DNA of 64,000 nt from IMGVR_UViG_3300047445_000186:1-64000; one strand, 5' to 3'. Positions 6,489-39,241 are shown, counted from the stretch's first letter. The notes: a model not told the origin generated them from the sequence alone. A program made the numbers and translations.

Positions 6489-7322
6489 ATGAAGCTCCTT
6501 CAAGAAATGCTGGGGCTGCTTGAAGCCTCGGCTAAGTTCGCAACTGATGCGGACGGTAATCTGATTCCAGCAAAGCTGCCTAAGCTCAGCCTTGGCGCGA
6601 TCAATGCAGCAATCTATCGTGTCGCAATCGCTTCGGTGAAGCTTCCAGCTGACGTGAAGGCTGACGCTCAGTTCACTGCAAAAGAAACAGATCGTTTCTT
6701 CAGCTCCCAGAACGACGAAGTGCTTTCGCAACTCGAGAAGTTCGCAGACGGCCGCGGGAACTATCAAGACGACGTGCTTGAAGCGTTCTACCGAGCGCTC
6801 GAAGATGTGGGTAACGAGATCATCGAGTACTACTCGAACAAAATGAATCACGCTCCAGGCTATCAAGCGCCAAAGATCGCTGCCTTCGATGCTGAAAAGG
6901 TTCCATCGTCCCGCGTGATCGCTGAGCTGAAGAAGTTCCCACACTGGGAAGAAGGTGTTCGCATTGAGAAGTGGACCGAGCAGAATCAAAAGAATGCGCG
7001 TAAAGCAAAGCACGCTTCTATGGTCTCTCCAGCGCTGATCGACAAGGTCGTGAAGGAATTCGACGCTCGCTTTGATGGCGAATTCACTGACAAGATCGCG
7101 AAAGAAATCACGCGCGATCCAGGCATGTTCGGCCTTCCAAATGGGTACGCTCCAAAGACTGGTGCAGAAGTTCGCGCCAAGATTCTTACATGGAAGCCAC
7201 GTGACATCATCGAGTGGATCATCGAGAACTCACGCAAGCTCAGCCACGATGAAATTTCTGCAGCCTTGAGCAGCAAGAAAACAGTCGACGCGATCTGGGC
7301 TAAGGTCTCCAAGGGTAAGTGA
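6489..7322 (+). CDS. hypothetical virion internal head protein
   Basis: 277 aa in head operon; N-terminus MKLLQEMLGLLEA resembles capsid-targeting/cleavage leader. Confidence 0.6.
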   Translation: MKLLQEMLGLLEASAKFATDADGNLIPAKLPKLSLGAINAAIYRVAIASVKLPADVKADAQFTAKETDRFFSSQNDEVLSQLEKFADGRGNYQDDVLEAFYRALEDVGNEIIEYYSNKMNHAPGYQAPKIAAFDAEKVPSSRVIAELKKFPHWEEGVRIEKWTEQNQKNARKAKHASMVSPALIDKVVKEFDARFDGEFTDKIAKEITRDPGMFGLPNGYAPKTGAEVRAKILTWKPRDIIEWIIENSRKLSHDEISAALSSKKTVDAIWAKVSKGK

Positions 7323-7337
7323 CCCAACCGGCCCCGG

Positions 7338-7343
7338 TAAATA
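7338..7343 (+). promoter_or_regulatory. late promoter TAAATA
   Basis: intergenic, upstream of small prohead core gene. Confidence 0.6.
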
Positions 7344-7375
7344 CTAACTTCATACAACAGACGAAAGGTACCGCT

Positions 7376-7543
7376 ATGAGCGATCCACGCGAACAACTGA
7401 AATCAATGCTTCAAGACCTGATCAATGATCGTCCAGAGCAAGCTTCTGCCACCATCCACGATTACATCGTGGCGAAGACGCAAGCCCTCGCAGGCTTTGC
7501 AGCTCCAGAAGCTGACGTTGATACTGAAGTCACCCCAGAGTGA
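7376..7543 (+). CDS. small acidic prohead core protein (gp67/gp68-like position)
   Basis: 55 aa MSDPREQLKSML..., GAAAGG RBS, sits between protease and scaffold. Confidence 0.55.
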   Translation: MSDPREQLKSMLQDLINDRPEQASATIHDYIVAKTQALAGFAAPEADVDTEVTPE

Positions 7544-7548
7544 TCACT

Positions 7549-7584
7549 ATGTGCTGAAAACATCCCCGTTTTCAGCACATTTTC
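7549..7584 (+). terminator. intrinsic terminator
   Basis: ATGTGCTGAAAAC-loop-GTTTTCAGCACAT followed by TTT. Confidence 0.65.
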
Positions 7585-7596
7585 CGAACTGCGCGC

Positions 7597-7602
7597 TAAA
7601 TA
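7597..7602 (+). promoter_or_regulatory. late promoter TAAATA (scaffold-capsid)
   Basis: intergenic, about 90 nt upstream of scaffold start. Confidence 0.65.
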
Positions 7603-7692
7603 CCACCACATGATAAAGAGTTGGTAACAACTTTAGTCACGCAGAAATTCAAATGTGGTAGCTTCATGCTACCGAAACTTAGGAGAAAGCTA

Positions 7693-8577
7693 ATGGACGA
7701 AATCCTGCAGAAACTGCTTCAGTCCGAGCTGCTCAGCGAAGAAACCAAAACTGAACTCTCCGAGCAATGGACCACTTCGGTCGAAGCCTACAAGACGCAA
7801 GTCCGTGAAGAAACTTCGCTCCAAGTTCGTTCGGAACTCGCAGAACAGTGGATCGGCGAACGCGACGAACTCGTCGCCAAGGTCGATGGTTTTGTGTCTG
7901 AAGCACTCATGAACGAAGTTGCTGAACTGAAGGCTGACATCGAGCGCTTCCGTGATCTCGAAGCTGAATACGCTGAAAAGATTGTTGAAGAGAAGCACAA
8001 GCTCGCAGAAGAAGTCGCATCTGAACTCGACCAACTGGTTGACAAGATCGATGCATTCTTCGAAGCACGCCTGAACGACGAACTCGATGAGCTCAAGGAA
8101 GACCTCGAAGTCGTGAAGCAAAACGAATTCGGTCGCAAGATCTACGAAGCATTCGCAAACACGTTCGCTGGCGCTCACATCGACGAATCGTCGATCGCTG
8201 GTAAGCTCAAGATTGCTGAAGCTAAGCTCGCAGATGCTACCTCCGCTCTTGCTGATTCGGAAGAATCCCGCTCGACGATGGTTCGCGAAGCAAAGATGAA
8301 CACGCTCCTCGCTAGCCTCACAGGCAAGAAGCGCGAAGCGATGGAAATGGTTCTCAAGAATGTCGAAACCGGCCGTCTTGAAGAGTCGTACAAGTTCTTT
8401 ATCGGTCGTGTCCTGAAGGAAGATGCTGCACCAGCTGCTGCTCTGACTGAAGGTAAGACGGTCGACAAGAAGACAACGGTTGTGACTGGTGACACGCAAG
8501 TCGAACAAGTCGCAAAACAACCTGCAGCCCTCAGTGAAAGCCTGCTCCAGCTGCAGCGCCTCGCCGGTATCAAGTAA
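7693..8577 (+). CDS. prohead scaffolding protein (T4 gp22-like)
   Basis: acidic coiled coil directly before MCP; AGGAGA RBS supports start 7693 rather than 7621. Confidence 0.85.
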   Translation: MDEILQKLLQSELLSEETKTELSEQWTTSVEAYKTQVREETSLQVRSELAEQWIGERDELVAKVDGFVSEALMNEVAELKADIERFRDLEAEYAEKIVEEKHKLAEEVASELDQLVDKIDAFFEARLNDELDELKEDLEVVKQNEFGRKIYEAFANTFAGAHIDESSIAGKLKIAEAKLADATSALADSEESRSTMVREAKMNTLLASLTGKKREAMEMVLKNVETGRLEESYKFFIGRVLKEDAAPAAALTEGKTVDKKTTVVTGDTQVEQVAKQPAALSESLLQLQRLAGIK

Positions 8578-8602
8578 CCCCTGTCCCCATTAGGAGATAA
8601 AA

Positions 8603-9856
8603 ATGCAACTCAATGAAAACTGGACCGAAACCAAAGAGGCTCTGCTCGAAGGCCTGACCGGTTCGAAGAAGACTCTCGCTTCGACGCTGATGGATAACCA
8701 GCGTCGCCACCTCCTGGAAACTGCAGGCGCCACTCAAAACGGCACCGGCGACATCCAAGGCTTCCAGAAGATCGCGATCCCAATGATCCGTCGTATCATC
8801 CCAGGTACGATCGGTACGGAACTCGTCGGTGTTCAGCCACTCACCGGCCCAGTCGGTCTGGCTTACTCCCTGCGCTTCGCTTTCGCTGAAGCCCTCGACG
8901 TCGCTGGCACAGGCAACGACATCGGTGTGAACGACGAAGCATTCTCGAACAACGTTTCGAAGATGAAGCGCTTCTACTCGGCAAACCTGCTCACCGGTTC
9001 GGTTGGTACGTCTGATGGTTCCACGACCAATGACTCCACTGGTCTGGAAGCTCAAGGTGGCCGCACGATGCGCCTGCAAGTTCTGAAGCAAACCATCTCC
9101 GCTGGCTCGCGTAAGCTGCAAGCGAAGTGGACTGTTGAAGCTCAGCAAGACATCGGTTCGCAACACGGTCTGAACCTCGAAAACGAACTGGTCGCTGCTC
9201 TGTCGGCCCAGATCGCGCACGAAATCGACAACGAAATCCTGACCGACCTCGTCGCTCTGGCTTCGACCGTCGCTACGTACGACTTCGCAGCTCCAGTCGC
9301 TGGCATGGCTCCAGCATTCATCGGTGATCGTTACGCTGAACTCGGCGTTCTCGTGAACAAGATGGCAAACGAAATCGGTGTGAAGACACGCCGTGGCCCA
9401 GCTAACTGGCTGGTCGGTTCCCACCTGACGACGTCCCTCCTGCAGTCCGCTGCAAAGTCGGTGTTCGCTCCAGCAGTCCAAGGCTCGTTCGCTGACCCAG
9501 TCGGCAACAAGATGGTTGGTACTCTGAACGGCCAACTGAAGGTGTACTCGTACCAGTGGGGTCTGGGTGATGCATGGACGATCGGTTCCGGCGCTGCTAC
9601 GGCAGACTCCGCAGCTGGTGAGCAGATTCTGCTCGGCTACAAGGGCGGTTCTTCGGAACTCGACTCCGGCTACTTCTACTGCCCATACGTGCCACTCATG
9701 TCCTCGGGCGTGATCATGGACCCAGCAACGTTCTCGCCAGCAGTTTCGCTGATGACCCGTTACGGCAAGGCAACGTTCACGAACGCTGCTACGTCGCTCG
9801 GTAACTCGGCTGACTACTACGCACGTATCCTCGTCAAGAACGTTGCATTCAGCTAA
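8603..9856 (+). CDS. major capsid protein (T4 gp23-like)
   Basis: IRRIIP..VGVQPLTGPVG, SRKLQAKWTVEAQQD, EIDNEIL, GYFYCPYVPL, LMTRYG. Confidence 0.96.
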   Translation: MQLNENWTETKEALLEGLTGSKKTLASTLMDNQRRHLLETAGATQNGTGDIQGFQKIAIPMIRRIIPGTIGTELVGVQPLTGPVGLAYSLRFAFAEALDVAGTGNDIGVNDEAFSNNVSKMKRFYSANLLTGSVGTSDGSTTNDSTGLEAQGGRTMRLQVLKQTISAGSRKLQAKWTVEAQQDIGSQHGLNLENELVAALSAQIAHEIDNEILTDLVALASTVATYDFAAPVAGMAPAFIGDRYAELGVLVNKMANEIGVKTRRGPANWLVGSHLTTSLLQSAAKSVFAPAVQGSFADPVGNKMVGTLNGQLKVYSYQWGLGDAWTIGSGAATADSAAGEQILLGYKGGSSELDSGYFYCPYVPLMSSGVIMDPATFSPAVSLMTRYGKATFTNAATSLGNSADYYARILVKNVAFS

Positions 9857-9894
9857 TCAAACGCAGCTTCGGCTGCTTTGACAAAGCCTCGAAC

Positions 9895-9923
9895 AAGGGA
9901 CTCTTCGGAGTCCCTTTTCTTTT
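9895..9923 (+). terminator. intrinsic terminator with UUCG loop
   Basis: AAGGGACTC-TTCG-GAGTCCCTT followed by T-tract. Confidence 0.85.
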
Positions 9924-9955
9924 GTGTGTCATCTTGCCCATTGAAAATTTCGATC

Positions 9956-9961
9956 TAAATA
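9956..9961 (+). promoter_or_regulatory. late promoter TAAATA
   Basis: upstream of 10029 gene. Confidence 0.55.
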
Positions 9962-10028
9962 GAGTTCCACCGTTGCTTTTGACTGTGGTAATTTGACCAC
10001 TTTGGTCTTTATTCTTTTAGGAAAATTT

Positions 10029-10505: not shown

Positions 10506-10526
10506 AACTCTAGCATCTTCGCAATC

Positions 10527-10547
10527 AAAGGGCCCATAGGGCCCTTT
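10527..10547. terminator. hairpin terminator
   Basis: AAAGGGCCC-ATA-GGGCCCTTT. Confidence 0.6.
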
Positions 10548-10596
10548 CTGGTATCCGGAATTTGGTGTATAATCCACCCATCAACCTGGAGGCCGT

Positions 10597-11438: not shown

Positions 11439-11507
11439 GCGACCCAGAGCGTCAGCTCTAACCTGATCTGTGCTACCGACATGGTAGTGCAAGCGTTACA
11501 ATGAAGC

Positions 11508-12722
11508 ATGAAAATTGCTGTCATTGGGGCTGGAATCGCTGGTACGCTTTCCGCCTATTTCTTGGCCGAGGATGGCCACCAAGTTACTGTCATTGATCGA
11601 GAACCTGAGCCCGCGATGGCTTGCACTCGAGCGAATGGCGGTCAAATCTCTGTCTGCAACGCCAGCACCTGGAACACGTGGTTGAACGTGCGCAAGGGTT
11701 TGAAGTGGCTCACACAAGCAGACGCCCCTCTCCTGATTCGTCCGAAGCCTGAACTCGCGAAGCTGAAATGGCTCGCTGGTTTCATGCGGCACGTCGTGAA
11801 CGGCACGCACGAGGCGAACACGATCGAGACGATCGGTCTCGGCCTGACATCACGTTCCTTGTACGAGAAGATCGCTGAGCGCGAAGGTCTGCAGTTCGAC
11901 AAGTCGAGCACTGGCCTGCTGAATGTGTACACGAGCGACAAGTCGTTCGAAGACGCGCTCGATGAGAACTGGATGTTCGCGTACGCTGGTCTTGAGCGGA
12001 AAGAGCTCACTACTGAGGAGGTGATAGCGCTTGATCCAGGTCTGAAGAACTTCAAACATCTCGTTGGCGGCATCCTGACCGAGTCCGATTGGACGGGCGA
12101 TCCGCACAAGTTCTGCCAGCAGCTCAGAACGATTCTCGAGTCACGCGGTACCCAGTTCCAATTCAATCAAGAGATCGAGCTTGGAACCGTGCACGATGCG
12201 AACACATTCACGCAGAACGGCCATGACTTGCTCGGCCTGTATGATCTGGTCGTCGTCTCGAACGGTCATGAGATCAGCCAGTTCGCATCGCACCTTGGCG
12301 ACTCGATGAATGTGTACCCTGTGAAGGGGTACTCGATTACGATCGATGTGGAAGGTGATGAAGCTCCTCAGTTCTCGCTCCTTGATGACGATCGCAAGAT
12401 CGTCTCCTCGCGTCTTGGCGATCGCTTCCGCATTGCCGGAACTGCTGAGCTCACTGGTGTGAATTACGACATCCGCCGAGATCGAATCGATCCGCTTTTG
12501 AACTGGGTCCGTGAGAACTTCCCGAACGTTCGAACAAGCACGTACAACCCGTGGGCCTGCCTCCGCCCAATGAACTCGAACATGATGCCAATCGTTCGTC
12601 GTTCCAAGAACCCGCGCGTCTGGTACCATGGCGGTCACGGCCATCTGGGCTGGACCCTTGGTGCGGCAACTGCGAATCAGCTCGCCGAGAAGATTCAAAT
12701 CGCCGTGACAGTGGGTGGCTAG
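11508..12722 (+). CDS. dadA: D-amino acid dehydrogenase (FAD-dependent, DAO family)
   Basis: IAVIGAGIAG FAD motif, RANGGQIS, YPVKGYSIT, RIAGTAEL, WACLRPM, GHGHLGWTLG. Confidence 0.85.
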   Translation: MKIAVIGAGIAGTLSAYFLAEDGHQVTVIDREPEPAMACTRANGGQISVCNASTWNTWLNVRKGLKWLTQADAPLLIRPKPELAKLKWLAGFMRHVVNGTHEANTIETIGLGLTSRSLYEKIAEREGLQFDKSSTGLLNVYTSDKSFEDALDENWMFAYAGLERKELTTEEVIALDPGLKNFKHLVGGILTESDWTGDPHKFCQQLRTILESRGTQFQFNQEIELGTVHDANTFTQNGHDLLGLYDLVVVSNGHEISQFASHLGDSMNVYPVKGYSITIDVEGDEAPQFSLLDDDRKIVSSRLGDRFRIAGTAELTGVNYDIRRDRIDPLLNWVRENFPNVRTSTYNPWACLRPMNSNMMPIVRRSKNPRVWYHGGHGHLGWTLGAATANQLAEKIQIAVTVGG

Positions 12723-12851: not shown

Positions 12852-13052
12852 ATGACAACTTACGCACGGAAGGTGCTCGACGTAGCAGTCCACAATCTGG
12901 ATCGCTCGATCGAAGTACAAGAAGCGTCTATCAAAGAGCTGCGGAATGATCTTGGCATCGCAGAGAACGATCTGCAGAACAGCTACAACCACCGCGTCGA
13001 GCTGATCAACTCGATCATCGCGCTCGACGCTCTGAAGCGAGATGCTGTCTAA
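12852..13052 (+). CDS. hypothetical coiled-coil protein
   Basis: 66 aa, AGGAGA RBS. Confidence 0.65.
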   Translation: MTTYARKVLDVAVHNLDRSIEVQEASIKELRNDLGIAENDLQNSYNHRVELINSIIALDALKRDAV

Positions 13053-13596
13053 GATCACGATCCCGTTCATTAGGAAGATCATTCCTAGTGTGATCGCGTC
13101 TGAACTTGTCAGTGTTCAACCGCTGACAGGCCCCGTAGGCGAGATCTTTTCGATCCGCCATAATTTAGAACTTTACTTTGGACCAGGAACAAACCAAGCC
13201 ATGATGAATATCCGCCAACGCTCTGTGAACGTCAATCGTCTCGAGCTGCTCGAGAAGCTCCGCGCCAATCTCGCTGTACATCGCGCCGAGTACGAAACCG
13301 CTCTGAGCGAGTACAAGCAACGTCTGATCGACGACCTGAAGCTTGCTGTGAAGAAGGTCGGCAAGGTCGAGAATCCACTCGAGCTGAAGAGCTTCCGATT
13401 CGCTCTGCCATTCCCACAGGATTACTCCTCGCAGTACGAGGAAGTGATCGACATGCTCGAGATGTCGGTTGATGAGAACATCAATCTCGACTCCGAATCG
13501 TTCAAGGCGTACCTGAAGAACGAGTGGTCGTGGAAGGGTAACTTCGAAGCTTCCGCCGCGATGTACAAGTCGGTCGGCTCTTCGCTCTCGCTGTAA
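13042..13596 (+). CDS. major-capsid (Gol-region) peptide fused to a 132-aa conserved phage domain; possible internal start at 13201
   Basis: residues 4-39 are 24/36 identical to MCP 8768-8875; CAGGA RBS before ATG 13201. Confidence 0.7.
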   Translation: MLSKITIPFIRKIIPSVIASELVSVQPLTGPVGEIFSIRHNLELYFGPGTNQAMMNIRQRSVNVNRLELLEKLRANLAVHRAEYETALSEYKQRLIDDLKLAVKKVGKVENPLELKSFRFALPFPQDYSSQYEEVIDMLEMSVDENINLDSESFKAYLKNEWSWKGNFEASAAMYKSVGSSLSL

Positions 13597-20230: not shown

Positions 20231-20282
20231 GCTGACCTGATTTGAAGGCCTTGCAGGTTCATAGATTCGGTACAATAGGCCG

Positions 20283-21220: not shown

Positions 21221-21221
21221 C

Positions 21222-22187: not shown

Positions 22188-22193
22188 TAAATA
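22188..22193 (+). promoter_or_regulatory. late promoter TAAATA
   Basis: upstream of neck gene. Confidence 0.6.
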
Positions 22194-25957: not shown

Positions 25958-26835
25958 TGAAGCTCCTCGATCTTTTTGAATCAGCGAAATACACCCTCGA
26001 GCAGGAGTTTATCATCCGCTCGTGGGGTCAGGTCTTGTACCTTGACTACTTCGATTTGCCTGCTGGCCGCAGCACTATTGGCACCTATGATTTGGCTGTT
26101 CTCGTTCGTGAGTACAACGAGGCAATCAAGTCTGGCGATGAAGACAAGATCACCGAGCTGGATGAGTGGATCGCTGAAGGCGCGCCATTGAAGAACGGTA
26201 AGCACGTGCTCACAAAGGAAACTGTTGACGTTCTGCTCACGCGAGCGCAACATAAAGCTGGCAAGGAGATCACGCTCTATCGGTTCGATGAACGAGACAA
26301 TCCATTGAAGCCAGATGCGTGGATCAGCATGACCACGAAAGATAACGGATACGCAGGCGCACGTCGTGAATACCATCTGAAGGCAGATGACCTGATCATT
26401 GACGCACATGGTCTTGCTGATGACCAGGAAGTGATCGTGAATACGAACGTGCTTCTTAAGTCTACAAACGAAGCGTACCAGCCAGAGTGGGAGAAGCCAT
26501 GCTGGATCGTCGCAATCAAGAACACCCTTGGCGTCTCTGAAGAGAAGATCAAGGAGCTTGCTCTGAAGCATGACTGGGACGGAAAGAGCGATGGTCTTGC
26601 TGTCAAGAACGTGATCATGATCGTGTGGGATTTGATCGGCCATATGCCTGATCTGTCGCTCACGAAGGACTCGAGAGGCATGACACCAAAGGAGTTCTCT
26701 GGCACTCAAGGCAAGACTGGTCTCGTGTTCACGAAGGCGCACGTGATGCCGATGATCAATGGCAAGGTATCAAATTTCAACGGGCACGGCGAAGAAGAAA
26801 TCGCGGCGGTCGCCACGTACAAAGGTAAGAAATGA
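25957..26835 (+). CDS. putative packaged protein: ADP-ribosyltransferase-like domain plus papain-like peptidase-like domain
   Basis: LYR..WISMT..DQEVIV (R-S-E pattern); CWIVAI...HVMPMINGKVSN (Cys-His-Asn pattern). Confidence 0.45.
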   Translation: MKLLDLFESAKYTLEQEFIIRSWGQVLYLDYFDLPAGRSTIGTYDLAVLVREYNEAIKSGDEDKITELDEWIAEGAPLKNGKHVLTKETVDVLLTRAQHKAGKEITLYRFDERDNPLKPDAWISMTTKDNGYAGARREYHLKADDLIIDAHGLADDQEVIVNTNVLLKSTNEAYQPEWEKPCWIVAIKNTLGVSEEKIKELALKHDWDGKSDGLAVKNVIMIVWDLIGHMPDLSLTKDSRGMTPKEFSGTQGKTGLVFTKAHVMPMINGKVSNFNGHGEEEIAAVATYKGKK

Positions 26836-27302
26836 TTCTGCAGGAGATCCTTGACAGCGTATATCCGTTCAAGCTGAAGAAGCATGCTGACGGTATGTCG
26901 GCGTCGTTCGTGAATGCGAACAAGAAGCGCGTCTCGGTCTCCTTGGTTGGGTACCACATTCCAGAAACTGGTTGGTCGTACGAGATCCAGTTCGCGATCA
27001 AGAACAGCACTGAGTTAACAGGTGATGGTGATCAGTTCAAAATCTTTGCGACTGTTTCTGCAATCGTGCAGGAGTTCTTGAAGGTCAAGAGCGATTGGCG
27101 AGCATCAGGAGTTCCTGTGCTACTGTTCTGCACGGCAGATTCAGGTGGCCGTCATGGACTGTACAGGAAGCTTGTTCAGCGAGTAATCGCTGGTACGAAA
27201 TTCAAAATCAAAGAACCAACCGCTCTGCCGAAGAACGTGCAAGAGTGGTGGTCGCAGCTGGAGTTCTCCGGCGACTCATACATTATGGCAACAACACTAT
27301 GA
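26832..27302 (+). CDS. hypothetical virion-associated protein
   Basis: MILQEILD leader; LTGDGDQFKIFATV motif recurrent in T4-like phages. Confidence 0.55.
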   Translation: MILQEILDSVYPFKLKKHADGMSASFVNANKKRVSVSLVGYHIPETGWSYEIQFAIKNSTELTGDGDQFKIFATVSAIVQEFLKVKSDWRASGVPVLLFCTADSGGRHGLYRKLVQRVIAGTKFKIKEPTALPKNVQEWWSQLEFSGDSYIMATTL

Positions 27303-28084
27303 TCAATAACTACTGGTTCGATAATCAACTGCGGAGCTACATCCTGCAGTTCGTCTCGATCTTCCAAGGTCTGCAAGTACAGACTGGTTCTGGCGAGTGC
27401 GATGAGGTTCAGCGAATCACCGTACCATGCGTGATCGGTAACAAGGACCGTGTCGTCGCAGCTCTGCACACTGGGAATACAGACAATCGCGTGTTCAGCC
27501 TGCCAACAATGTCCGTGCACATGCAAGGTCTGCAGCTCGCTCCTGAACGTCGGAAGGTTCAAGCATTCGTGGATCAGCGAGTGACCATGAAGGCTGGTGG
27601 CGTGTTCCCGCAAGACTTGACGACCGTTAAGCGCGCGATGCCAATCCCGTACAACATGACGATCGAACTGAGCATCTACGCGTCGAACACTCTGCAACGC
27701 GATCAGATCCTAGAGCAAATCCTCGTGCTGTTCAATCCGGATCTGCAGATCCAGAAGTCTGATGGTGCATTCGACTGGACACGTCTGACAAAGGTTGAAC
27801 TGACTGACATCGCGAACGAAGAGAACTATCCATCGGCGACTGATCGCCGCATGATCGTCTGGACTCTGTCGTTCGAGCTGCCGATCTTCCTGAGCGTTCC
27901 GATGGGCGTGAAGGATGACTTGGTCCGGAAGGTCATTATCCAGATTGGTTCGCTAGATACTCTAGTAGTGAATGAAGTTGACGAGAATGGAGAACTGACT
28001 CCGTTCGGCACTCCAATTGCTCGTATCGAGTACGACACCCGCGACCCTGTAGGTCCAATTCCTGACGGCCCAGTCCAAGTATGA
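27299..28084 (+). CDS. tail sheath stabiliser/terminator (T4 gp15-like)
   Basis: YWFDNQLRSYILQF, PIPYNMTIELSIY, QILEQILVLFNP. Confidence 0.85.
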   Translation: MINNYWFDNQLRSYILQFVSIFQGLQVQTGSGECDEVQRITVPCVIGNKDRVVAALHTGNTDNRVFSLPTMSVHMQGLQLAPERRKVQAFVDQRVTMKAGGVFPQDLTTVKRAMPIPYNMTIELSIYASNTLQRDQILEQILVLFNPDLQIQKSDGAFDWTRLTKVELTDIANEENYPSATDRRMIVWTLSFELPIFLSVPMGVKDDLVRKVIIQIGSLDTLVVNEVDENGELTPFGTPIARIEYDTRDPVGPIPDGPVQV

Positions 28085-29667
28085 TTTCATTCAAGCAATT
28101 CCTCGCCGAAAAGGCAATGAACAAAGGCGCGTACGCTAAGGCTGCGGCCCGCGTAGGCGGAGACGCACGTATCGGTTTTGAGATCGAAGTCGTTGTTCCA
28201 GCAAAAACCGCAATGCACGTCGGTCCTTCTGAAACGAAGGACGATCCGTCGAACATCGAAGACATCCGTAAGTACGACTCTCTGAGCGAGTTCGAGGTCA
28301 CGTTCTATGTGACGCAGAATGATCGTGCAAAGATCAATCGTGACTTCGGAGACTGGGTGGCAGCCCAGGAAGATGACTGGGTTGAGGGGAACTGGCACTC
28401 ATTCGTTGATGACGACGAGCATGAAGACAATCCAGATCGCGCTGAGAAGAATGCGCGCCGTGAAGCCGCACGTGAGTACGACAAGTCTGACGACACCTTT
28501 GATGTCTGGGTTGATCGTGAATTCAGAACCTCAAAGTCATTCGTTGATTTCTACGATCTTGAGCCAAACTACGGCTGGCACAACGACTACACGGTGTACA
28601 CGTCTGATCCACAAGGCGAGTCCGAGATGTACATGAACGGCTGGGGTGAGACAGCAAAGTACATGGCACAGCAGCTCGAGCTGATCGTAAAGAACAAGGT
28701 CGTCGTGAACGGTTCCGGCTATTCAAGCTGGAACCTTACCCATGACACCTCGATCAAAGACGATCAAGGCACTGATTACGAATCAGGCATGAACGGGTAC
28801 GGTATTGAAATCGTCTCTCCTCCGCTGAAGTTCGAAACCGCGTTCACTCTCCTTGAAGCTGTTCTCCGTTGGGTAGATCGGAACGGCATGAACACGAATG
28901 AGACGACTGGCATTCACATGAACATGTCTCTGAACGACATGGCTGATTTCGATCCATTGAAGCTCGTGCTGTTCATGGGTGACAAGCACATCCTTGAGAA
29001 GTTCAATCGTCTTTCGAACACGTTCACTCGCTCGCAGATTCAGCTTGCTGCTGACGGCGTCGAGATGACTGGCACTCTGCCAAAGGGCGTGGCTGAGATT
29101 GAGAAGGCTGCTCGTGAATCGCTGAAGACTTCAGGTAAGTACTTCTCGGTTAATCTGAACCACATGCCGAAGTACCTCGAGTTCCGCGCTGCTGGCGGTC
29201 CAGGATACCACAAGCGAATCGCTGATCTGCACGAATTGATGGGCCGTTGGCTGACCGCCATGGAGATCGCAACCGATCCGGCACGTGAACGGAAAGAGTA
29301 CCTGAAAAAGATCGCGAAGCTCGCAGGGCTGACATCGATCGGTAAGGCGCAACAAGGCGATTCAGTCGAGAAGTCATTCAAGGACGCAGTTCTTGGTCCA
29401 CGCGGTCGTCGCTGGCTCTGGGACGGCGTCCAAAAGGCTCTTGAGTCTGGTGATGCAGCAAAGATCAAGACGGCTCTGAAGTCGCTCGTGATGGAGATCA
29501 TTTCCGATTACGAAGACGGATCGCCAAAGAAGCCGACCTTTAAACAGGTAAAAGAAGCCCGTGCAATGTTCAAGCAGGCCGGAGTGAAACTGAATGATTT
29601 GCAGGGAGACGACAAAGAACTGCGCGGCGCGTACGCAAAATTCAATCACATTTGGAGTGTCGACTGA
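28081..29667 (+). CDS. putative amidoligase (COOH-NH2 ligase superfamily)
   Basis: IGFEIE, GIEIVSPPL, TGIHMNMS, KYFSVN, YLEFR motifs. Confidence 0.75.
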   Translation: MISFKQFLAEKAMNKGAYAKAAARVGGDARIGFEIEVVVPAKTAMHVGPSETKDDPSNIEDIRKYDSLSEFEVTFYVTQNDRAKINRDFGDWVAAQEDDWVEGNWHSFVDDDEHEDNPDRAEKNARREAAREYDKSDDTFDVWVDREFRTSKSFVDFYDLEPNYGWHNDYTVYTSDPQGESEMYMNGWGETAKYMAQQLELIVKNKVVVNGSGYSSWNLTHDTSIKDDQGTDYESGMNGYGIEIVSPPLKFETAFTLLEAVLRWVDRNGMNTNETTGIHMNMSLNDMADFDPLKLVLFMGDKHILEKFNRLSNTFTRSQIQLAADGVEMTGTLPKGVAEIEKAARESLKTSGKYFSVNLNHMPKYLEFRAAGGPGYHKRIADLHELMGRWLTAMEIATDPARERKEYLKKIAKLAGLTSIGKAQQGDSVEKSFKDAVLGPRGRRWLWDGVQKALESGDAAKIKTALKSLVMEIISDYEDGSPKKPTFKQVKEARAMFKQAGVKLNDLQGDDKELRGAYAKFNHIWSVD

Positions 29668-32651: not shown

Positions 32652-32657
32652 TAAATA
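32652..32657 (+). promoter_or_regulatory. late promoter TAAATA
   Basis: upstream of AAA+ ATPase. Confidence 0.6.
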
Positions 32658-32688: not shown

Positions 32689-34242
32689 ATGCTTTCCTTC
32701 ATTGATTTCCTGGCAGAAGCCCAGTTCAGCGACGACGATTTTGCTCGCGTTCTGAGCGTCTTCGAACGCCGTCTCCCAAAGCTCCTTGGCGCTAAGCTGT
32801 ACCGTTACGGTGGTAAAAACCACGTTGAAAAGGTCGGCTCCGCTTCCCGGATCGTGTACATTTTCAATGACCGCGCATTCGGTGTTCGCTTCAAGGGCGG
32901 TCACGTTATTGGCATCGACGTCTGGTCCTCGTTCAAGGGTGGTCCAAGCCACTTCATCGACGTGCACACGCTCGCCGCTTCTTCCCTGATTGCTTCGATC
33001 AGCAAGCTCGCTGCTCTGATCAAGAATCCAAAGGAAGGTACGCACGAAGTGAACGCGGTGAATGAATCCGTTCAGCTCGATGAGATGGCACGTCGCGTTG
33101 ACGACAGCGCTTTCTACAAGTTCATGGTCGCTGCGTACGGTGAAGACGGTGCACAGAAGGTTACTTGGGCTCAGATCAAGACTGTCGCTGACGACAATGA
33201 CGTTCTGATTCCACGCTACATCCGTGACCAGAAGATTGGCCGCGGTCTCTGGACCTCGAAGCCAGGTGCTGGTGGTTCTTCCGAAGGTGGTGACGCCGCT
33301 GCTCCAGAAGCTGCTCCAAAGGCCGCTAAGAAGGAACCAATCCTGTACATCAAGGTCACGGCTCAGGACCCTGACACGAAGCGCTTCATCCCTGCTGGTG
33401 AAGTGAAGCAAGCCCAAGCTCTGTACAAGCAGATCGCTTCTGGCATGGCTGATCACAAGCCTTCCGAAAAGGAAATGCGCGATCCAGACACTCTGTACGG
33501 TCACTTGTCGCAACTCGTCGACATGACTTGTAAGGGTACGCTCCGCTCGCTGCTGATCTACGGTGGTCCAGGTACCGGTAAGACGTACACGATTATGCAG
33601 ACGATCAAGCAAGCTGGCATGACGTCTGGTAAAGAGTACATCAAGATGTCGGGTAAGGCATCTCCACTGTCGATCTACCAAACACTGTTCATGTTCCGCG
33701 AAGGCGGTCTCGTTGTGTTCGACGACTTGGACTCGATGTGGGGTAATGAAGACGCAACGAACATCTTGAAGGGTGCTCTCGATACGTCACCAGTCCGCGA
33801 AATCACATGGGGTTCTTCGAGCACTGTGAACGTTTCGAAGATGGACAAGGAAGAGCGCGAGCAATTCAATCGTCAAGTGGACGACAAGCTCGAAACGAAC
33901 CCAGAGAAGGTCAAGCTGCCTAATCAGTTCGAATTCAAGGGCCGCGTTGTGTTCATCTCGAACCTGAAGAAGGACGAGTTCGACACCGCGATCATGTCGC
34001 GTTCCGCAAAGATCTGTATGGACCTGACTCCAGAGGAAATTCTGAAGCGCATGCGTTCCGTTCTGCCAGGTCTCGGTGGTGACGACGTTCCACTGAAGGA
34101 TAAGGAAGCTCTGCTTGATCACCTGATCAAGATGCACGGTAATGGCGAACTCGATGCTGTCACAATGCGTGAGTTCGTTAAGGGTCTGAACATCTTCCGC
34201 TCGGGTGCTCCGAACTGGAAGGACCTGATCCAGTATTCCTAA
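32689..34242 (+). CDS. AAA+ ATPase with N-terminal domains
   Basis: Walker A GGPGTGKT, Walker B VVFDDLD, VFISN sensor, MSRS arginine finger. Confidence 0.85.
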   Translation: MLSFIDFLAEAQFSDDDFARVLSVFERRLPKLLGAKLYRYGGKNHVEKVGSASRIVYIFNDRAFGVRFKGGHVIGIDVWSSFKGGPSHFIDVHTLAASSLIASISKLAALIKNPKEGTHEVNAVNESVQLDEMARRVDDSAFYKFMVAAYGEDGAQKVTWAQIKTVADDNDVLIPRYIRDQKIGRGLWTSKPGAGGSSEGGDAAAPEAAPKAAKKEPILYIKVTAQDPDTKRFIPAGEVKQAQALYKQIASGMADHKPSEKEMRDPDTLYGHLSQLVDMTCKGTLRSLLIYGGPGTGKTYTIMQTIKQAGMTSGKEYIKMSGKASPLSIYQTLFMFREGGLVVFDDLDSMWGNEDATNILKGALDTSPVREITWGSSSTVNVSKMDKEEREQFNRQVDDKLETNPEKVKLPNQFEFKGRVVFISNLKKDEFDTAIMSRSAKICMDLTPEEILKRMRSVLPGLGGDDVPLKDKEALLDHLIKMHGNGELDAVTMREFVKGLNIFRSGAPNWKDLIQYS

Positions 34243-34312: not shown

Positions 34313-34318
34313 TAAATA
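34313..34318 (+). promoter_or_regulatory. late promoter TAAATA
   Basis: intergenic. Confidence 0.6.
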
Positions 34319-34342: not shown

Positions 34343-35371
34343 ATGAAACTCATCCAAGAAATTCAAACCATTGTTGAAGCCAAGGGCGTCAAAGACTCGC
34401 TCTCTGATACTCAACTGAAGTATGTTCTCCGTGGCGCAGCCACTGGTAGCCGTATCGAAGCTGATGGAAAGATCGTTTGGCCAGGCACTGCGTCGACAAT
34501 CTTCAATTCACGTGAAGCTAAAGAAAAGTATGCTCGTAAGGGTGATGCATTTGCCGAGAAGATGAAGACCGGCAAGTTCAACAAGGTCGTGATCAAGGAT
34601 TACCAAGCACGTGGCGCCGGCGGTCAATGGCTGACTGCTGAAACGTACGAACTGACGATCAACGAATCGTTCACGCTTGGCTCGAAGCAACACGCTGAAC
34701 TCGCAGCAGCTGCAAAGGGTCTGGACAAGATGACCGTTCGTCGCTTCAAGACGATCGTCAAGTACTCGACCATGAGCCAGCACGATTGCACTGAAATCAC
34801 CGACATGTTGAACACTGTCGACGCTGACAAGGTTCTGACGCGTCATGACATCGAGCAAATTGCAGCTTCAACGAACACTGATCTTGGCGAACTGCTTGAT
34901 CTTTCGAATCTGAATGAGGCGGAAGAGAAGAAGACAGCAAACCCAGAATTTGCCAAGGGTCTCGAAGCAGGTATGAAGGCGCTCAAGAAGCTTCGTCCCC
35001 AAGGCAAGATCATCCCAGGTTTCGTTCATAACATCGGCAGTGCGAGCCACGAACGTCATGATGCATCGTTCGAGTACGATTTCGAATATGACGGCAAAAC
35101 ATACGAAGCTGCGATCCGTGTAGATTACTCGAAGTCTGGTGGCGTCAGCCGCCCACCACAGTACCACTACTCGTACTACAGCTTCAAGGACAAGAACGAA
35201 AAGAACGCTCGTATGTTCAACCCACAAGCTGACTCCGGCCCGTTCATCACGGATCTGAGCGAGCTCGGCAAGGAACTGAACTCCTGGGAAAAGCACATTG
35301 CTGATGGCTTGATCGCTCAGAAGAAGCGTTGGGAAGCTGATCTCGAAAAGATGCGTCCAAAGAAGAAGTAA
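34343..35371 (+). CDS. hypothetical internal head protein (probable polyprotein)
   Basis: MKLIQEIQTIVEA leader; internal TINE/S and LNE/A junctions. Confidence 0.55.
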   Translation: MKLIQEIQTIVEAKGVKDSLSDTQLKYVLRGAATGSRIEADGKIVWPGTASTIFNSREAKEKYARKGDAFAEKMKTGKFNKVVIKDYQARGAGGQWLTAETYELTINESFTLGSKQHAELAAAAKGLDKMTVRRFKTIVKYSTMSQHDCTEITDMLNTVDADKVLTRHDIEQIAASTNTDLGELLDLSNLNEAEEKKTANPEFAKGLEAGMKALKKLRPQGKIIPGFVHNIGSASHERHDASFEYDFEYDGKTYEAAIRVDYSKSGGVSRPPQYHYSYYSFKDKNEKNARMFNPQADSGPFITDLSELGKELNSWEKHIADGLIAQKKRWEADLEKMRPKKK

Positions 35372-36661
35372 ATGGCCGATATTTCGCAACTCCTGAGATC
35401 CTCAGGCATTGACGCTCAGCGCACTGCGACTGATCTGTTCGGTGCCGCTGTTGAGGACTTCGCGGCAAAGCCACTGAACGGCTTGCTGAACTCCGTCACT
35501 GGACGGAACGGCACGGCGGCTCAGGGGCGAAATGATCCAGGTACATGGTACGCAACATCGTACGCTGCCTCTTTGGCGAACTCGCAGTACCGTCCGAAGT
35601 TGAAGTTCATGTTCCGCGTGGAGTTCTTGTTCGAGCCAAAGGTGCTCGAGACATTCGGCCGCGCCGAATGGCAAAAGAACTTCACCTTCCTCGTGAAGAC
35701 TGTAGATCGTCCAAAGGTCGACTTCGAGTACGAGGACGTGAATCAGTACAACTTTAGAACGAAGGTCTTGAAGCAGATCAAGCACCGTGAACTGACGCTC
35801 TCATTCACTGACGACGTCGGCAATCACGTGTACGAGTTCTTCCGTTTCATGATGATGGTTCACTCACCAATTACCCGTCGCTCTGCTTACGCATCAAGTG
35901 ACATCTCGGCTGCGTACGCAACGTACACCGCTGGTTCGGGCATGGAGTTCACGAAGGGTCTCGGTCCTATCAATGACTTCGCGCACCGTGGTGCTGTTGA
36001 CACCGATCTTGGCAATGCGATCCGCGCAATCAAGATCACTCAGATCTTCATCAACCCTTCCGATACGCCGCCAAATGCAGCGAAGGAAGTGTCGTTCTTC
36101 TTCATCAATCCACGCGTAACCTCGTTCGACTTGGATGATGTGTCGCATGAAGCATCTGATCCGAATCTGTTCACGATGCAGTTCGATTATGACTTCATGG
36201 TCATGAGCAAGCAAGAACTCTTGAAGCCACTGAGCGCTGACAAGTCTCTCCCACCAGTTGGCACTGCTCCAGGTGAAGCTGCTCCTACACCAGGTTCTGG
36301 CACTAGCACTGGGTACGGTTCTGGCGCAATGGATCCGTACATTGGAATGCTCGCTGGTATTGGTGGCCGTGCTGTACAGAAGATCACCTCAGATACCGTT
36401 GGCAAAGCTCTGCGAACCATTCCTGGTCTCGGTTCTGTCGCTGACAACATCGGTGGTATCACGCAAGGTATTGCGCGTGACCAGCTTGCAGGGATCGGTC
36501 AAACTGTGAACCAAGCGTTCGCTCGACCAGGTCGCGACATCGTGACTGATTTGTCGACTGCTGGCCGTGATGCAGCGTCGTACATCACTTCTATTGGTTC
36601 AGGTGGATTCGGCTCAGGCCAACCATCCGTGAACGTAACTGATCTTGGCGGATATCTCTAA
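35372..36661 (+). CDS. baseplate tail-tube initiator (gp48/gp54-like tube fold)
   Basis: RPKLKFMFRVEF, VDRPKVDF, NQYNFR, LSFTDD, FTMQFDYD. Confidence 0.7.
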   Translation: MADISQLLRSSGIDAQRTATDLFGAAVEDFAAKPLNGLLNSVTGRNGTAAQGRNDPGTWYATSYAASLANSQYRPKLKFMFRVEFLFEPKVLETFGRAEWQKNFTFLVKTVDRPKVDFEYEDVNQYNFRTKVLKQIKHRELTLSFTDDVGNHVYEFFRFMMMVHSPITRRSAYASSDISAAYATYTAGSGMEFTKGLGPINDFAHRGAVDTDLGNAIRAIKITQIFINPSDTPPNAAKEVSFFFINPRVTSFDLDDVSHEASDPNLFTMQFDYDFMVMSKQELLKPLSADKSLPPVGTAPGEAAPTPGSGTSTGYGSGAMDPYIGMLAGIGGRAVQKITSDTVGKALRTIPGLGSVADNIGGITQGIARDQLAGIGQTVNQAFARPGRDIVTDLSTAGRDAASYITSIGSGGFGSGQPSVNVTDLGGYL

Positions 36662-37146
36662 TGCTTCTCACTGAACTCCTGGCCTATCATGGCACTGGTA
36701 AGAAACCAACAACGAAGCTGAAGCCGCCTATCTTCGTGACAACTCAACGTGAAGGCGCTGAGTGGTATGCTGCTGAGCGCGGGAACGGCGAGAATGGTGT
36801 TATCCTCGTTGGCGATCTTCAAGTGAAGAAGCCGTTCGATCTGCGTAGGTTCGATGGGTACGAGAAATACCTAGAGTTGGCTAAGTCTGCGGGGATCGAG
36901 TTCGAGGGCATGGATGTCCATAACGAGCAGTTCTTCTGCAAGGAAATTCAAGATCACTCGCCATACGATGGCACGAACTCCTCTGACCTCGTGTACATTC
37001 CGAAGTTTCAAGCGGCACTGAAGGCCGCTGGATATGATTCATTGCACATGAGTGACGTGCTCACGAATGATGAGATCGACACGTACGTGATCTTTGATCC
37101 ATCACTGTTCAAGATTAAGCGCGCTGAGAAGCATCTGTACTACTAA
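36661..37146 (+). CDS. ADP-ribosyltransferase-fold protein (ART-PolyVal-like), copy 1
   Basis: YHGT, IFVT, AEWYA, GYDS, EIDTYVIFDP. Confidence 0.6.
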   Translation: MLLTELLAYHGTGKKPTTKLKPPIFVTTQREGAEWYAAERGNGENGVILVGDLQVKKPFDLRRFDGYEKYLELAKSAGIEFEGMDVHNEQFFCKEIQDHSPYDGTNSSDLVYIPKFQAALKAAGYDSLHMSDVLTNDEIDTYVIFDPSLFKIKRAEKHLYY

Positions 37147-37153
37147 GAACGCA

Positions 37154-37642
37154 ATGCTTCTCTCTGAAATCACCGTCTATCACGGCTCTGAAGCTGCTCC
37201 TAAGGGGAAGTTCAAGATGCCTCTGTTCTTGACACCAAACAAGAATGGTGCTTCGTGGTATGCTCGCGAGCATGCTGGCGCCGGCAGAACTGGTGTCCTC
37301 GTGACTGGTGAGCTGAACGTGAAGAAGCCGCTTGAGGCTTATGGATACGGTCTGTGGAAGAAGATGCTTGACGTCGCTCAGTACGCAGGCATTCGTTTCA
37401 AGAACGATCCGTACTTCCAGTGCGATGAGATCAGCGACGCTGGACACTCTGGTTCGAACATCGGTGATCTCGTCTATCTTCCGAAGTTCCAGCAAGAGCT
37501 GAAGAGACAGGGATACGACTCAGTGCACATGAGTGACGAGCTAGTCGGTAGCTCGATCGAAGTGTACGTGATCTTCAAACCATCACAATTCAAAATCACC
37601 AGCATCGGCGATCCAATTTCGACCGATGACGCTTGGAAATAA
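37154..37642 (+). CDS. ADP-ribosyltransferase-fold protein (ART-PolyVal-like), copy 2
   Basis: YHGS, LFLT, ASWYA, GYDS, SIEVYVIFKP; tandem paralog of copy 1. Confidence 0.6.
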   Translation: MLLSEITVYHGSEAAPKGKFKMPLFLTPNKNGASWYAREHAGAGRTGVLVTGELNVKKPLEAYGYGLWKKMLDVAQYAGIRFKNDPYFQCDEISDAGHSGSNIGDLVYLPKFQQELKRQGYDSVHMSDELVGSSIEVYVIFKPSQFKITSIGDPISTDDAWK

Positions 37643-37643
37643 T

Positions 37644-38087
37644 ATGGCAGCATCACGTGGCACAATGAAGGGTCGGTTCATTCCGAAGAACCCACAGAAA
37701 TACCTTGGGAACTCCGATCGAATCATCGGTCGCTCGAGCTGGGAATTCCGCCTGTTCCAATGGTGTGACAGCACTCCAGCAGTTCTGCAATGGGCTAGTG
37801 AAGAGTTCTCCGTTCCGTACCTGTCGCCAATTGACAACAAGGTTCATCAGTACTACCCTGACGCGCTCGTTGTTTACCGTGACAAGTTCGGGAACATCAA
37901 GAAAGAAATCGTTGAAGTGAAGCCGTACAAAGAGACGGTCAGAACTCCAAAGTCAACTGAACGGGATCTGATCGCTCTTGCAATCAATGAAGCTAAGTGG
38001 AAAGCCGCTGTGCGTTTCGCTGAGCAGCAAGGCATGACGTTCCGAATCATCACTGAAAAGACAATGTTCAAGCAGGCTGGCAAATGA
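37644..38087 (+). CDS. head completion nuclease (T4 gp4-like, TnsA-type fold)
   Basis: KGRFIPKNPQKYLG, RSSWE, WASEE, YYPD, VEVKP, NEAKWKAA. Confidence 0.9.
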   Translation: MAASRGTMKGRFIPKNPQKYLGNSDRIIGRSSWEFRLFQWCDSTPAVLQWASEEFSVPYLSPIDNKVHQYYPDALVVYRDKFGNIKKEIVEVKPYKETVRTPKSTERDLIALAINEAKWKAAVRFAEQQGMTFRIITEKTMFKQAGK

Positions 38088-39241
38088 AACAGACCTTTAA
38101 ACAATTCAACGAATCGACTGAGCTGAACACCATTCATGTCCGCCCACTGAAGTCGGTCGAGCTTCATCGTGCAAAGGAAGCCGTTCAAGCCGCCTTGCTC
38201 GGTCACCAGCTCGCAAAAGAAAAGAAGCCAACACTCGATCAGATCAAGGCTGTTCATGATCAGCTCGCGAAGTTCAAGCTCCCGTTCGTGCAGGCGATCG
38301 TGAAGGAGCTTGATGAGGTGTTCGAGAAGTACCGCGCAATGATGAACGCTGGCACAAAGCTGTTCAGCCACGGCGCCGCAGTCGGCTCGTTGAACAAGGC
38401 GATGAAGGCCGCGTTCCTGTCAGGCGACAAGGCGAAGTTCAAGGAACTGAAGGCTCAGGCAGACTCCAAGATTGCAGACCTGGACCACCACGTGGACGCC
38501 GAGGCCACCGCGCATCGCAAGGTGAAGAACTCCTTTACGGCTGAAGCAAGCATCTTCGGCACCACCCGGCTCCTGTCAACGGTCGGGGATCATGAGTACG
38601 ACAAGCTGAAGGCTCTGGACTTCAGCCAGCCGCTGTACACAGGCCTCGATTTCCCGACGAAGCAAGCACATGACTTCCATTACGTCCTGTACTTCCTGAC
38701 GAATCTCACTAACTCTCCGAAGCCGATCCGGATGACGAGCGCGAATGAGTTCAGAACGCACACTCGTGTGAAGTACGCGAATGATGGTAAGCTCGAGAAG
38801 CTCTTGAAGATCACGGATGATTACCTGCACTCGAACGACAAGACACTGATCCCGCAGATCATGGCGCTTGTGAACGACATTCCTTCGATCAAGTCAGCGA
38901 ACGACTCAGCCAAGAAGAAGATCAAGACGGTTTATCGAGGGATCGGGATTGGTGAAGATGATGAGGGAGATCCGTCTCGCGATCAGATTATCGCCCAAGA
39001 CCGCGAGAGTAAATACGTTGCAACGTCTGATTCACGGCACGCCGCAAAGAACTTCGCATTGCAGAAGGGTCACTTAGAAGACAGTGAAGAGCGCCGTTCC
39101 GCTCTCGGATACATCATCGAGTACCGAGTAACTCCAGATGCGATCCTGTTCGACACGAAGGTGATCGACACCGTGTACAACGAGTCAGAAATTTTGATTG
39201 ACGCCACGAAGGCGGAAGTCGTAGAAATCAAGGAAGTATAA
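38084..39241 (+). CDS. putative packaged ADP-ribosyltransferase (Alt-like, R-S-E class)
   Basis: MKQTFKQFNE leader; VYRG, VATS..AAKNFA, NESEIL. Confidence 0.6.
   Translation: MKQTFKQFNESTELNTIHVRPLKSVELHRAKEAVQAALLGHQLAKEKKPTLDQIKAVHDQLAKFKLPFVQAIVKELDEVFEKYRAMMNAGTKLFSHGAAVGSLNKAMKAAFLSGDKAKFKELKAQADSKIADLDHHVDAEATAHRKVKNSFTAEASIFGTTRLLSTVGDHEYDKLKALDFSQPLYTGLDFPTKQAHDFHYVLYFLTNLTNSPKPIRMTSANEFRTHTRVKYANDGKLEKLLKITDDYLHSNDKTLIPQIMALVNDIPSIKSANDSAKKKIKTVYRGIGIGEDDEGDPSRDQIIAQDRESKYVATSDSRHAAKNFALQKGHLEDSEERRSALGYIIEYRVTPDAILFDTKVIDTVYNESEILIDATKAEVVEIKEV

Follow-up and report, generated by a model that had tools for sequence, protein, structure and literature searches.

Short leaders of the T4 type point to a large, modular and probably injected head cargo in a jumbo phage

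Background

Phage proteins that enter the host together with the DNA are active ahead of any phage gene expression. They are prime candidates for functions in host take-over and counter-defence, and they are hard to find. The question of which proteins might travel in this way is raised by a stretch of 64,000 nucleotides (IMGVR_UViG_3300047445_000186:1-64000, here called the window), which opens a virus record of 331,776 bp (CheckV completeness 94%) with 473 genes called over the whole genome. Between positions 6489 and 39241 of the window, a series of proteins with dissimilar bodies begin with short leaders that end in a glutamate, and glutamates in comparable contexts recur inside some of them. 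A sequence-only reading of the window had taken these to be a family of about ten late proteins with leaders like the capsid-targeting sequence (CTS) of phage T4, which would be packaged in the head, cut into domains and injected with the DNA. The analysis reported here leads to a similar answer on a larger scale. The best-supported explanation, so far as sequence can tell, is that the leaders probably represent T4-type capsid targeting with release by the prohead protease, expanded to a modular and probably injected cargo. We found no earlier description of such a system from this jumbo-phage clade in the open-access literature.

Two types of N-terminal leader

All nine N-termini picked out in the sequence-only reading are indeed encoded in the window, by plus-strand genes that start at 6489, 25957, 26832, 28081, 32689, 34343, 36661, 37154 and 38084 (genes are named below by their start positions). 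They fall into two types, which we call A and B; a slash marks the proposed cut. Type B leaders are seen in 28081 (MISFKQFLAE/K), 32689 (MLSFIDFLAE/A) and 38084 (MKQTFKQFNE/S). Type A leaders, with the general form M-K-L-x-E-L-F-E, are seen in 25957 (MKLLDLFE/S), 6489 (MKLLQEMLGLLE/A, nt 6489-6524) and 34343 (MKLIQEIQTIVE/A), and a short version of this type in 26832 (MILQE/I), 36661 (MLLTE/L) and 37154 (MLLSE/I). For 26832 the N-terminus as it had been read ends in an aspartate; its glutamate is at position 5. The putative propeptide of 36661 and 37154 comprises only 5 residues, immediately ahead of the YHG that is conserved in the ART-PolyVal domain, a domain related to the ADP-ribosyltransferases (ARTs).

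To avoid circularity, two strict regular expressions were built from the leaders of related metagenomic phages and not from the window. A looser signature was defined as M, followed by K/R/I/L/N/Q, an aliphatic residue, one or two residues, E and a hydrophobic residue, and expected counts were taken from internal positions of the called proteins. Among the 473 genes, strict type A matches at the N-terminus were observed 6 times against 0.12 expected, strict type B matches 4 times against 0.16, and matches to the loose signature 26 times against 1.45 (Poisson P about 1e-23). The enrichment over internal positions is 25- to 50-fold for the strict leaders, and 18- to 50-fold with the loose signature included. 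The union of these candidates comprises 38 proteins with 9,717 residues in total, 33 of which are encoded in units headed by the motif TAAATA (see below); a family size of about ten was hence an underestimate. With the first 15 residues removed, similarity is detected in 6 of the 703 pairs of these proteins, and as the bodies are dissimilar in the other 697, the leader is common to unrelated proteins. Moreover, from copy to copy and from phage to phage the leaders vary in their synonymous codons while the residues stay the same, which indicates selection on the peptide and not on the RNA. Two runs of adjacent genes with leaders, at genome positions 162987-166720 and 265215-268679, are outside the window and remote from the structural module. 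They include the gene at 165222, which encodes a protein with a phosphoribosyltransferase domain and the start MLTFKDFIAA, devoid of the glutamate.

A sequence logo of 19 leaders has L (16), F (2) or I (1) at P3, E in 19 of 19 at P1, and mostly A, S, G or K at P1'; the proposed cut site is of the L/I-x-E type of T4 gp21. The T4 leader invoked in the sequence-only reading is borne out, as internal proteins (IPs) IPII and IPIII both start with MKTYQEFIAE/A. Related T4 N-termini are those of IPI (MKTFKEF), gp24 (MAKINELLRE/S), Alt (MELITELFDE) and gp22 (MLKEQLIAE/A), and gp23 is cut at LTE65/A. The first 10 residues of T4 IPIII suffice for packaging, with residues 4 and 7 acting in targeting and residues 8 and 10 in processing (PMC9026906). 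Type B leaders retain all four of these mapped positions: 28081 and 32689 have F4, F7, L8 and E10 where T4 IPII and IPIII have Y4, F7, I8 and E10, and 38084 displays the same pattern shifted by one residue. The type A leaders fit T4 gp24 and Alt rather than the IPs.

A T4-like head module with a gp21-family protease

The presumed enzyme for cutting after glutamate is a prohead protease of the T4 gp21 family encoded at 5877-6485 (plus strand, as are the portal, scaffold and capsid genes below), which matches Pfam Peptidase_S77 (PF03420) with 93.5 bits, above the cut-off, and phrog_207 with E 5e-56. It is 32% identical to T4 gp21 and retains the GELNHP and GVSSRG blocks. Its gene lies between the portal gene and the scaffold and capsid genes, just before leader gene 6489, with a TAAATA motif at 5845-5850, 32 nt upstream, and its own N-terminus, MQLLKE/Y, looks like a leader. 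The head module (portal, protease, scaffold-like protein and gp23-like major capsid protein, MCP, encoded in a row) is T4-like, and identities to the T4 counterparts are in the range of 28-32%. The T4 gp20-like portal protein (4129-5847; phrog_213 portal, E 1.9e-86) is 28% identical to gp20. The scaffold-like coiled-coil protein (7693-8577), an analogue of T4 gp22, shares its N-terminus with RsoM2USA ORF382 and XacN1 ORF275, and the Met at 7693 is likely to be its true start. The MCP (8603-9856; phrog_138, E 3.8e-82) has a predicted propeptide cut after Glu39 (HLLE/TA, nt 8708-8725), and in a MAFFT alignment this LLE39 site falls at the known T4 site LTE65/A. Neck, sheath-stabiliser, sheath, tube, head-closure and terminase genes are found downstream of the head module.

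Ranking 321 proteins by the density of hydrophobic-x-Glu sites placed the scaffold-like protein first (21 sites in 303 aa) and the protease fifth, with the MCP depleted (rank 256) apart from its aligned LLE39 site. Taken as internal calibrators, these three proteins are in agreement with the proposed cut site. The density is low in enzyme-like leader carriers, such as 28081 (rank 193) and 32689 (rank 234).

Conservation and replacement of leaders in related phages

By MCP, the closest cultured relatives are Ralstonia phage RsoM2USA (51%), Xoo-sp13, Stenotrophomonas phages CM1 and RAS14, and XacN1, followed by the Rak2/121Q group (40%); a megablast search of the region against cultured phages gave no match. 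Closer relatives were obtained by scanning IMG/VR with the AAA protein, which recovered seven loci that are 54-66% identical, in addition to two identical loci of the phage itself. Orthologs of 28081 start with MITFKQFLAE/K or MITFKQFLSE/R above bodies that are 35-41% identical, and the most distant one (31% body identity) has a type A start, MKLDVLFE/R, instead. Every ortholog of 32689 at the relatives' loci keeps a type B leader. Across the 25 homologs of the 38084 family the leader is likewise kept, with replacement by type A in two cases, and the stand-alone homologs of the N-terminal module of 25957 have type B leaders as against the type A leader in this phage. These swaps within orthologous families imply that the two types are interchangeable.

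In the relatives, the slots between the neck, sheath, tube and head-closure genes are occupied by different genes, most of which carry a type A or B leader; in one relative, 10 of the 25 genes in the structural-gene interval are leader-bearing. RsoM2USA has three leader genes (ORF403-405) in the slot that matches 25957 and 26832. Gel-band proteomics of RsoM2USA reportedly covered 10 abundant bands, and ORF403-405 are not among them, which is evidence neither way.

Internal junctions and module boundaries

Boundaries within proteins were assessed from stand-alone homologs, from alignment of a paralog's leader with the junction, and from disordered linkers in structural models. The five internal linkers that had been proposed to separate domains are all present: STNE/A in 25957, AVNE/S and QLDE/M in 32689, and TINE/S and NLNE/A in 34343. 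Four of the five lie at module boundaries; for NLNE/A this part of the claim found no comparative support.

In 25957, STNE/A (26461-26475, aa 169-173) lies between two modules. Its homologs comprise either the N-terminal module alone, with 168-171 residues and ending just before STNE/A, or the C-terminal module in other fusions. The latter begins around PEWEKPCW and occurs N-terminally or behind other modules, with junctions such as TLVE/A, and one homolog has at least three modules. In the AlphaFold2 (AF2) model of 25957, the only segments with pLDDT below 50 are aa 1-10, the leader, and aa 171-179, the junction. In 32689, the block AVNE/SVQLDE/MA (33055-33090, with AVNE/S and QLDE/M within aa 123-133) is almost invariant in five orthologs, and the residues after QLDE/M align with those after the N-terminal leader MAFSLLQE/M of a paralog at genome position 162987 (39% over 64 aa, E 7e-12). 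The first module of 34343 follows the leader in this phage and an internal junction ending in GWVLTE/A in relatives. It ends at TINE/S (nt 34655-34669, aa 105-109), at which point the relatives' proteins end; NLNE/A lies further on (nt 34907-34921, aa 189-193). More generally, a module at the relatives' loci may stand behind a leader in one case and behind an internal LTE/A, LIE/G, LVE/A or VLE/T junction in another, and a fused gene in relatives has retained an internal MKLSFKQFIQE/M. The junctions, like the leaders, lie on the plus strand.

An additional observation concerns a 68-aa late protein (40243-40449), which ends with an internal type B-like SFKQFME/A (motif at 40396-40425). Its homologs in relatives run on past an internal MKLSFKQFIQE/M or LTFKEYLMVE/A into a further module, and to judge from this layout the element looks like a relic of a gene fusion or of a split at the leader.

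Promoter-like motifs upstream of leader genes

The motif TAAATA is enriched 13- to 17-fold upstream of genes, and 16 copies lie on the plus strand within the window's first 45 kb. The portal-operon, protease, scaffold, neck, sheath and tube genes have a copy 25-70 nt upstream, and most leader genes elsewhere in the genome are preceded by one as well. Examples are 32652-32657, 37 nt upstream of 32689, and 34313-34318, 30 nt upstream of 34343, as well as a late-promoter-like copy at 22188-22193 (plus strand), which heads the run of genes from neck to amidoligase that includes 25957 and 28081. TAAATA-headed units, the type shared with structural genes, contain 9 of the 10 strict leader genes (Fisher P 7.7e-4) and 21 of the 26 loose ones (3.5e-6). 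In RsoM2USA, TAAATA is also found before the portal, scaffold, neck and ORF403 genes. The T4 late promoter, TATAAATA, is not found in the genome.

A second promoter-like motif, [TG]TACA[AG]T (often CGTTACAAT), precedes 51 genes genome-wide, with examples at 11496-11502, 20270-20276, 43760-43766 and 49315-49321. It often ends 8-15 nt before the start codon, so that, if it is a promoter, the messages would be leaderless or nearly so. A separate late family that is not of the leader type occurs at genome positions 287280-306138, outside the window. Its three paralogs, each about 400 aa long with the start MTSPVDTSVK, are preceded by TAAATA, and very large genes follow two of them.

The candidate cargo

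On the sequence evidence, the candidate cargo holds an amidoligase, an AAA ATPase, two ART-PolyVal-like proteins and at least two ADP-ribosyltransferase-like domains of the R-S-E kind. Enzymes of this class, to which Alt/ModA/ModB and the C3 and ExoS types belong, have catalytic Arg, Ser-Thr-Ser and Glu-x-Glu motifs in an ART fold. The protein of 38084 (38084-39241) combines a helical N-terminal domain with a C-terminal ART-like domain bearing an R-S-ExE motif, in which R285, T314, S315, E367 and E369 are invariant in 25 homologs. Its AF2 model has a pLDDT of 88, with the leader (aa 1-11) below 50, and the C-terminal domain gives middling scores against ART-fold proteins such as Tpt1/KptA (Z 7.6), TreX, PT S1 and CT A1, with Foldseek E above 0.1. 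A tblastn search with it gave weak matches to Tenacibaculum phages only. The two-module protein of 25957 (25957-26835; AF2 pLDDT 82) has an ART-like domain at aa 9-168, for which the top Foldseek matches are weak ones to the ARTs ExoS, C3 and Certhrax (E 0.015-0.3, with ExoS at 0.015). Its second module, at aa 173-292, matches papain-like proteins weakly and contains a Cys and a His that are conserved; tblastn with the whole protein gave no match. The small ART-PolyVal-like proteins of 36661 (36661-37146; N-terminus MLLTE/LLAYHG) and 37154 (37154-37642; MLLSE/ITVYHG) are paralogs with 47% identity, and score 21.1 and 25 bits, respectively, against Pfam PF18760, below its cut-off of 31.2.

The protein of 28081 (28081-29667) is recognized by Pfam Amidoligase_2 with 40.1 bits against a cut-off of 22, and by phrog_2443. 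That of 32689 (32689-34242) matches Pfam AAA (25 bits) and phrog_1250 (E 1e-32), and is laid out as leader, N-terminal module, conserved junction block and low-complexity linker. The three-module protein of 34343 (34343-35371) gave nothing usable in an Atlas search. The 156-aa protein of 26832 (26832-27302; MILQE/ILD) is not present at the relatives' loci, and it has a paralog at genome position 253317 that also has a leader-like start. The 277-aa protein of 6489 (6489-7322) is an orphan with no Pfam or PHROG family and no relatives except in identical contigs, and its gene directly follows that of the protease, in the position of a head-core gene.

Proposed mechanism and alternative explanations

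Based on the above, we propose that the leader, an amphipathic N-terminus of 5-12 residues ending in hydrophobic-x-Glu, acts as a CTS through which proteins made late would dock on the prohead's scaffold core. Next, the leader would be removed by a cut after the glutamate, made by the gp21-family protease (5877-6485), which would also cut the equivalent hydrophobic-x-Glu module junctions, such that multi-module precursors are released as separate small proteins in the head. The freed proteins, among them ADP-ribosyltransferase-like domains, the amidoligase, the AAA ATPase, the papain-like module and many of unassigned function, would be retained in the head alongside the DNA and would reach the host at infection, in the manner of T4 Alt and the IPs. 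Core binding, cleavage, retention in the virion and injection are all steps that we infer. Wherever the T4-type proposal of the sequence-only reading can be examined in sequence, it is supported, namely by the protease, the match of the leaders to those of T4, their unrelated carriers, their conservation, the swapping of types and four of the five junctions. The presence of ART-like enzymes among the carriers, as is the case for the packaged T4 Alt, is also counted in its favor.

There are several observations that weigh against this proposal. Hydrophobic-x-Glu is a short motif and is found inside folded domains too. A word search and locus scans for the second and third modules of 34343 recovered only the phage itself, which leaves NLNE/A without comparative counterparts. 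The enzyme assignments are weak save for the amidoligase and the R-S-ExE motifs, with Foldseek E at best 0.015 and Z of 7.6 or less. TAAATA is a putative late promoter, judged from the position of the motif, and the leader genes are classed as late by this motif; a search of the genome with the annotated late sigma factor of XacN1 gave no match, and the sequencing runs that contain the phage are rhizosphere DNA metagenomes only, with no RNA. Among the cultured relatives, the AAA homolog of RsoM2USA (ORF429) has no leader. No strict leader was found in the head region of XacN1 or in its virion chitinase and lipase, nor was a strict leader family found in the 100 kb of phAPEC6 that were examined. 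The virion proteomes of XacN1 (PMC5852040) and phAPEC6 (62 proteins; PMC7247149), both of them more distant relatives, consequently neither support nor test the proposal. One phAPEC6 virion protein encoded beside the protease, gp228c, starts with MANLKLLQE/A; its body is unrelated to 6489, and we regard it as anecdotal and do not use it as support. Lastly, a type B look-alike at 49328 sits behind a motif of the TACAAT type and not TAAATA, and is a doubtful member. The protein in question (49328-50479) contains an HD domain and an AAA_33 kinase domain, is RNA-repair-like, and has a perfect type B start, MEKFEQFLAE/F, which is either due to chance or indicates that an early-made protein is packaged as well.

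The leaders could also direct their carriers to the prohead core with a different outcome, in which most carriers are core or scaffold accessories that are cut up and expelled before DNA packaging instead of being injected. T4 gp22, gp67 and gp68 are core proteins that are cut to pieces and expelled in this manner before the DNA is packaged. The position of 6489 among head-core genes and its want of an enzymatic domain would agree with such a fate, as would the number of small candidates with no assigned function, the leader-like N-terminus of the T4 scaffold gp22 (MLKEQLIAE/A), and the scaffold-like protein being the richest here in potential cut sites. However, several carriers are folded and enzyme-like, with invariant catalytic motifs and few hydrophobic-x-Glu sites, and would survive as T4 Alt does, while rapid turnover and module shuffling between relatives suit host-directed effectors better than parts of an assembly. 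We consider it rather unlikely that expulsion accounts for most carriers.

A signal unrelated to the head, for example one for a chaperone or a tail or baseplate assembly factor, a stability or degradation tag, or a translation booster for late messages with short untranslated regions, appears unlikely to us. It is favored by the location of most examples in the window among neck, sheath and tube genes and not head genes, by the many leader genes with no clear upstream Shine-Dalgarno sequence, and by the location in the head being itself deduced. Yet the retention of residues under varying codons places the signal in the peptide, which matches the experimentally mapped head-targeting positions of T4, and the same type of sequence recurs at internal module junctions, where translation start has no role. 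With regard to gene neighborhood, T4 alt also adjoins baseplate and tube genes, an association noted for packaged ARTs (Iyer et al., PMC5512222). It is harder still to attribute the resemblance between leaders to a functionless by-product of common N-terminal composition, with its Met-Lys and helical amphipathic starts, or of whole-gene ancestry. Met-Lys starts are common in bacteria and phages, and a loose hydrophobic-x-Glu occurs in the first 13 residues of 47 of the 473 genes. Nevertheless, the 18- to 50-fold enrichment together with unrelated bodies in 697 of 703 pairs brings this explanation close to being refuted; in addition, the leader is kept as bodies drift to 31-41% identity, and leader genes are tied to one promoter class. 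We regard it as very improbable.

Relationship to known systems

The signal and the protease family are the same as in T4; what is new is the probable cargo, which is far larger, built of modules and quick to change, in a clade of jumbo phages distant from T4. As with T4 IPI-III (CTS; Mullaney and Black 1996, reviewed in PMC9026906), leaders of about 10 residues stand on unrelated proteins, a small residue follows the glutamate, and a protease of the gp21 family is present. In contrast to the handful of IPs in T4, there are about 38 candidates here, which are mostly 120-530 aa long, some with enzyme domains, whereas the IPs are small basic proteins. The genes here, unlike those of the IPs, are interspersed with tail and neck genes and dispersed over the whole genome, and have two interchangeable leader classes. 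T4 Alt is cut at ITE-6 and LTE-619 (PMC5694885), and its 6-residue propeptide is comparable to the short MLLTE/L form on the two small ART-like proteins. Further likenesses to Alt are the ART-type enzymes (with R-S-ExE in the 38084 family), a short propeptide ending in hydrophobic-x-Glu, and a location beside tail genes. BLASTP against Alt revealed no detectable similarity (E > 2), and at least four ART-like genes are seen here as opposed to one packaged ART.

The polyvalent proteins (Iyer et al. 2017, PMC5512222) resemble the present set in carrying unrelated effector modules in a polypeptide encoded beside virion genes and reshuffled between relatives, to which may be added the weak ART-PolyVal matches and the two independently occurring modules of 25957. 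In contrast to them, the proteins here are small, with 2-3 modules, and release is proposed to occur through the prohead protease at junctions that mimic leaders. Pfam scans detected no MPTase or other built-in processing peptidase, and no hallmark polyvalent domain above threshold. In the jumbo phages phiKZ, 201phi2-1 and SPN3US, many head-internal proteins, of the inner body and ejected, are cut after glutamate by a gp21-related protease, some of them more than once (PMC5694885, PMC7411985), as is predicted here. The sites in those phages are of the S/A/G-x-E or A-x-E type, mostly behind propeptides of more than 100 residues, whereas the leaders here have L, F or I at P3 and 5-12 residues, and are T4-like.

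Other features of the window

Two genes resembling the terminase large subunit (TerL) lie in tandem at 41454-42197 and 42190-43722. The first product (247 aa) matches the N-terminal ATPase part only and the second (510 aa) is full length; two relatives also have a short gene before TerL. An MCP-like fragment gene at 13042-13596, separate from the gene of the real MCP, has a 184-aa product that matches phrog_34511 and, over residues 5-42, the stretch conserved at the N-terminus of major head proteins (phrog_138). A 429-aa protein (35372-36661) that is conserved in all relatives and carries no leader is tail-tube-like in its N-terminal part (phrog_4542) and is extended at the C-terminus by a Gly/Ser-rich stretch. 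A protein resembling FAD/NAD-binding oxidoreductases, with the start MKIAVIGAGIAG, is encoded at 11508-12722, between the capsid and tail-fibre genes and behind a motif of the TACAAT type.

Conclusions

If the rule proposed here is true, the injected proteins of an entire clade of jumbo phages from soil and plants, the cultured RsoM2USA among them, can be predicted from a short signature, and the T4 targeting peptide would prove to have persisted where the head proteins share only about 30% identity. The proposed shuffling of modules that are split by protease sites would be a form of cargo diversification that has not been described for T4. A further step, which we offer tentatively and do not hold to be probable, is that leader and internal junction are one portable boundary, meaning 'dock, then cut here', that flanks every cargo module. 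In that case recombination or gene fusion at the boundaries could move modules from one phage of the clade to another with no loss of packaging and release. Each phage would have an arsenal of about 30-40 injected proteins, or roughly 8% of its genes, in a combination of its own, and for uncultured jumbo phages a simple sequence rule applied to metagenomes could reveal which proteins are injected. As was done with the T4 CTS, the leader could also be tried out as a packaging tag in these phages.

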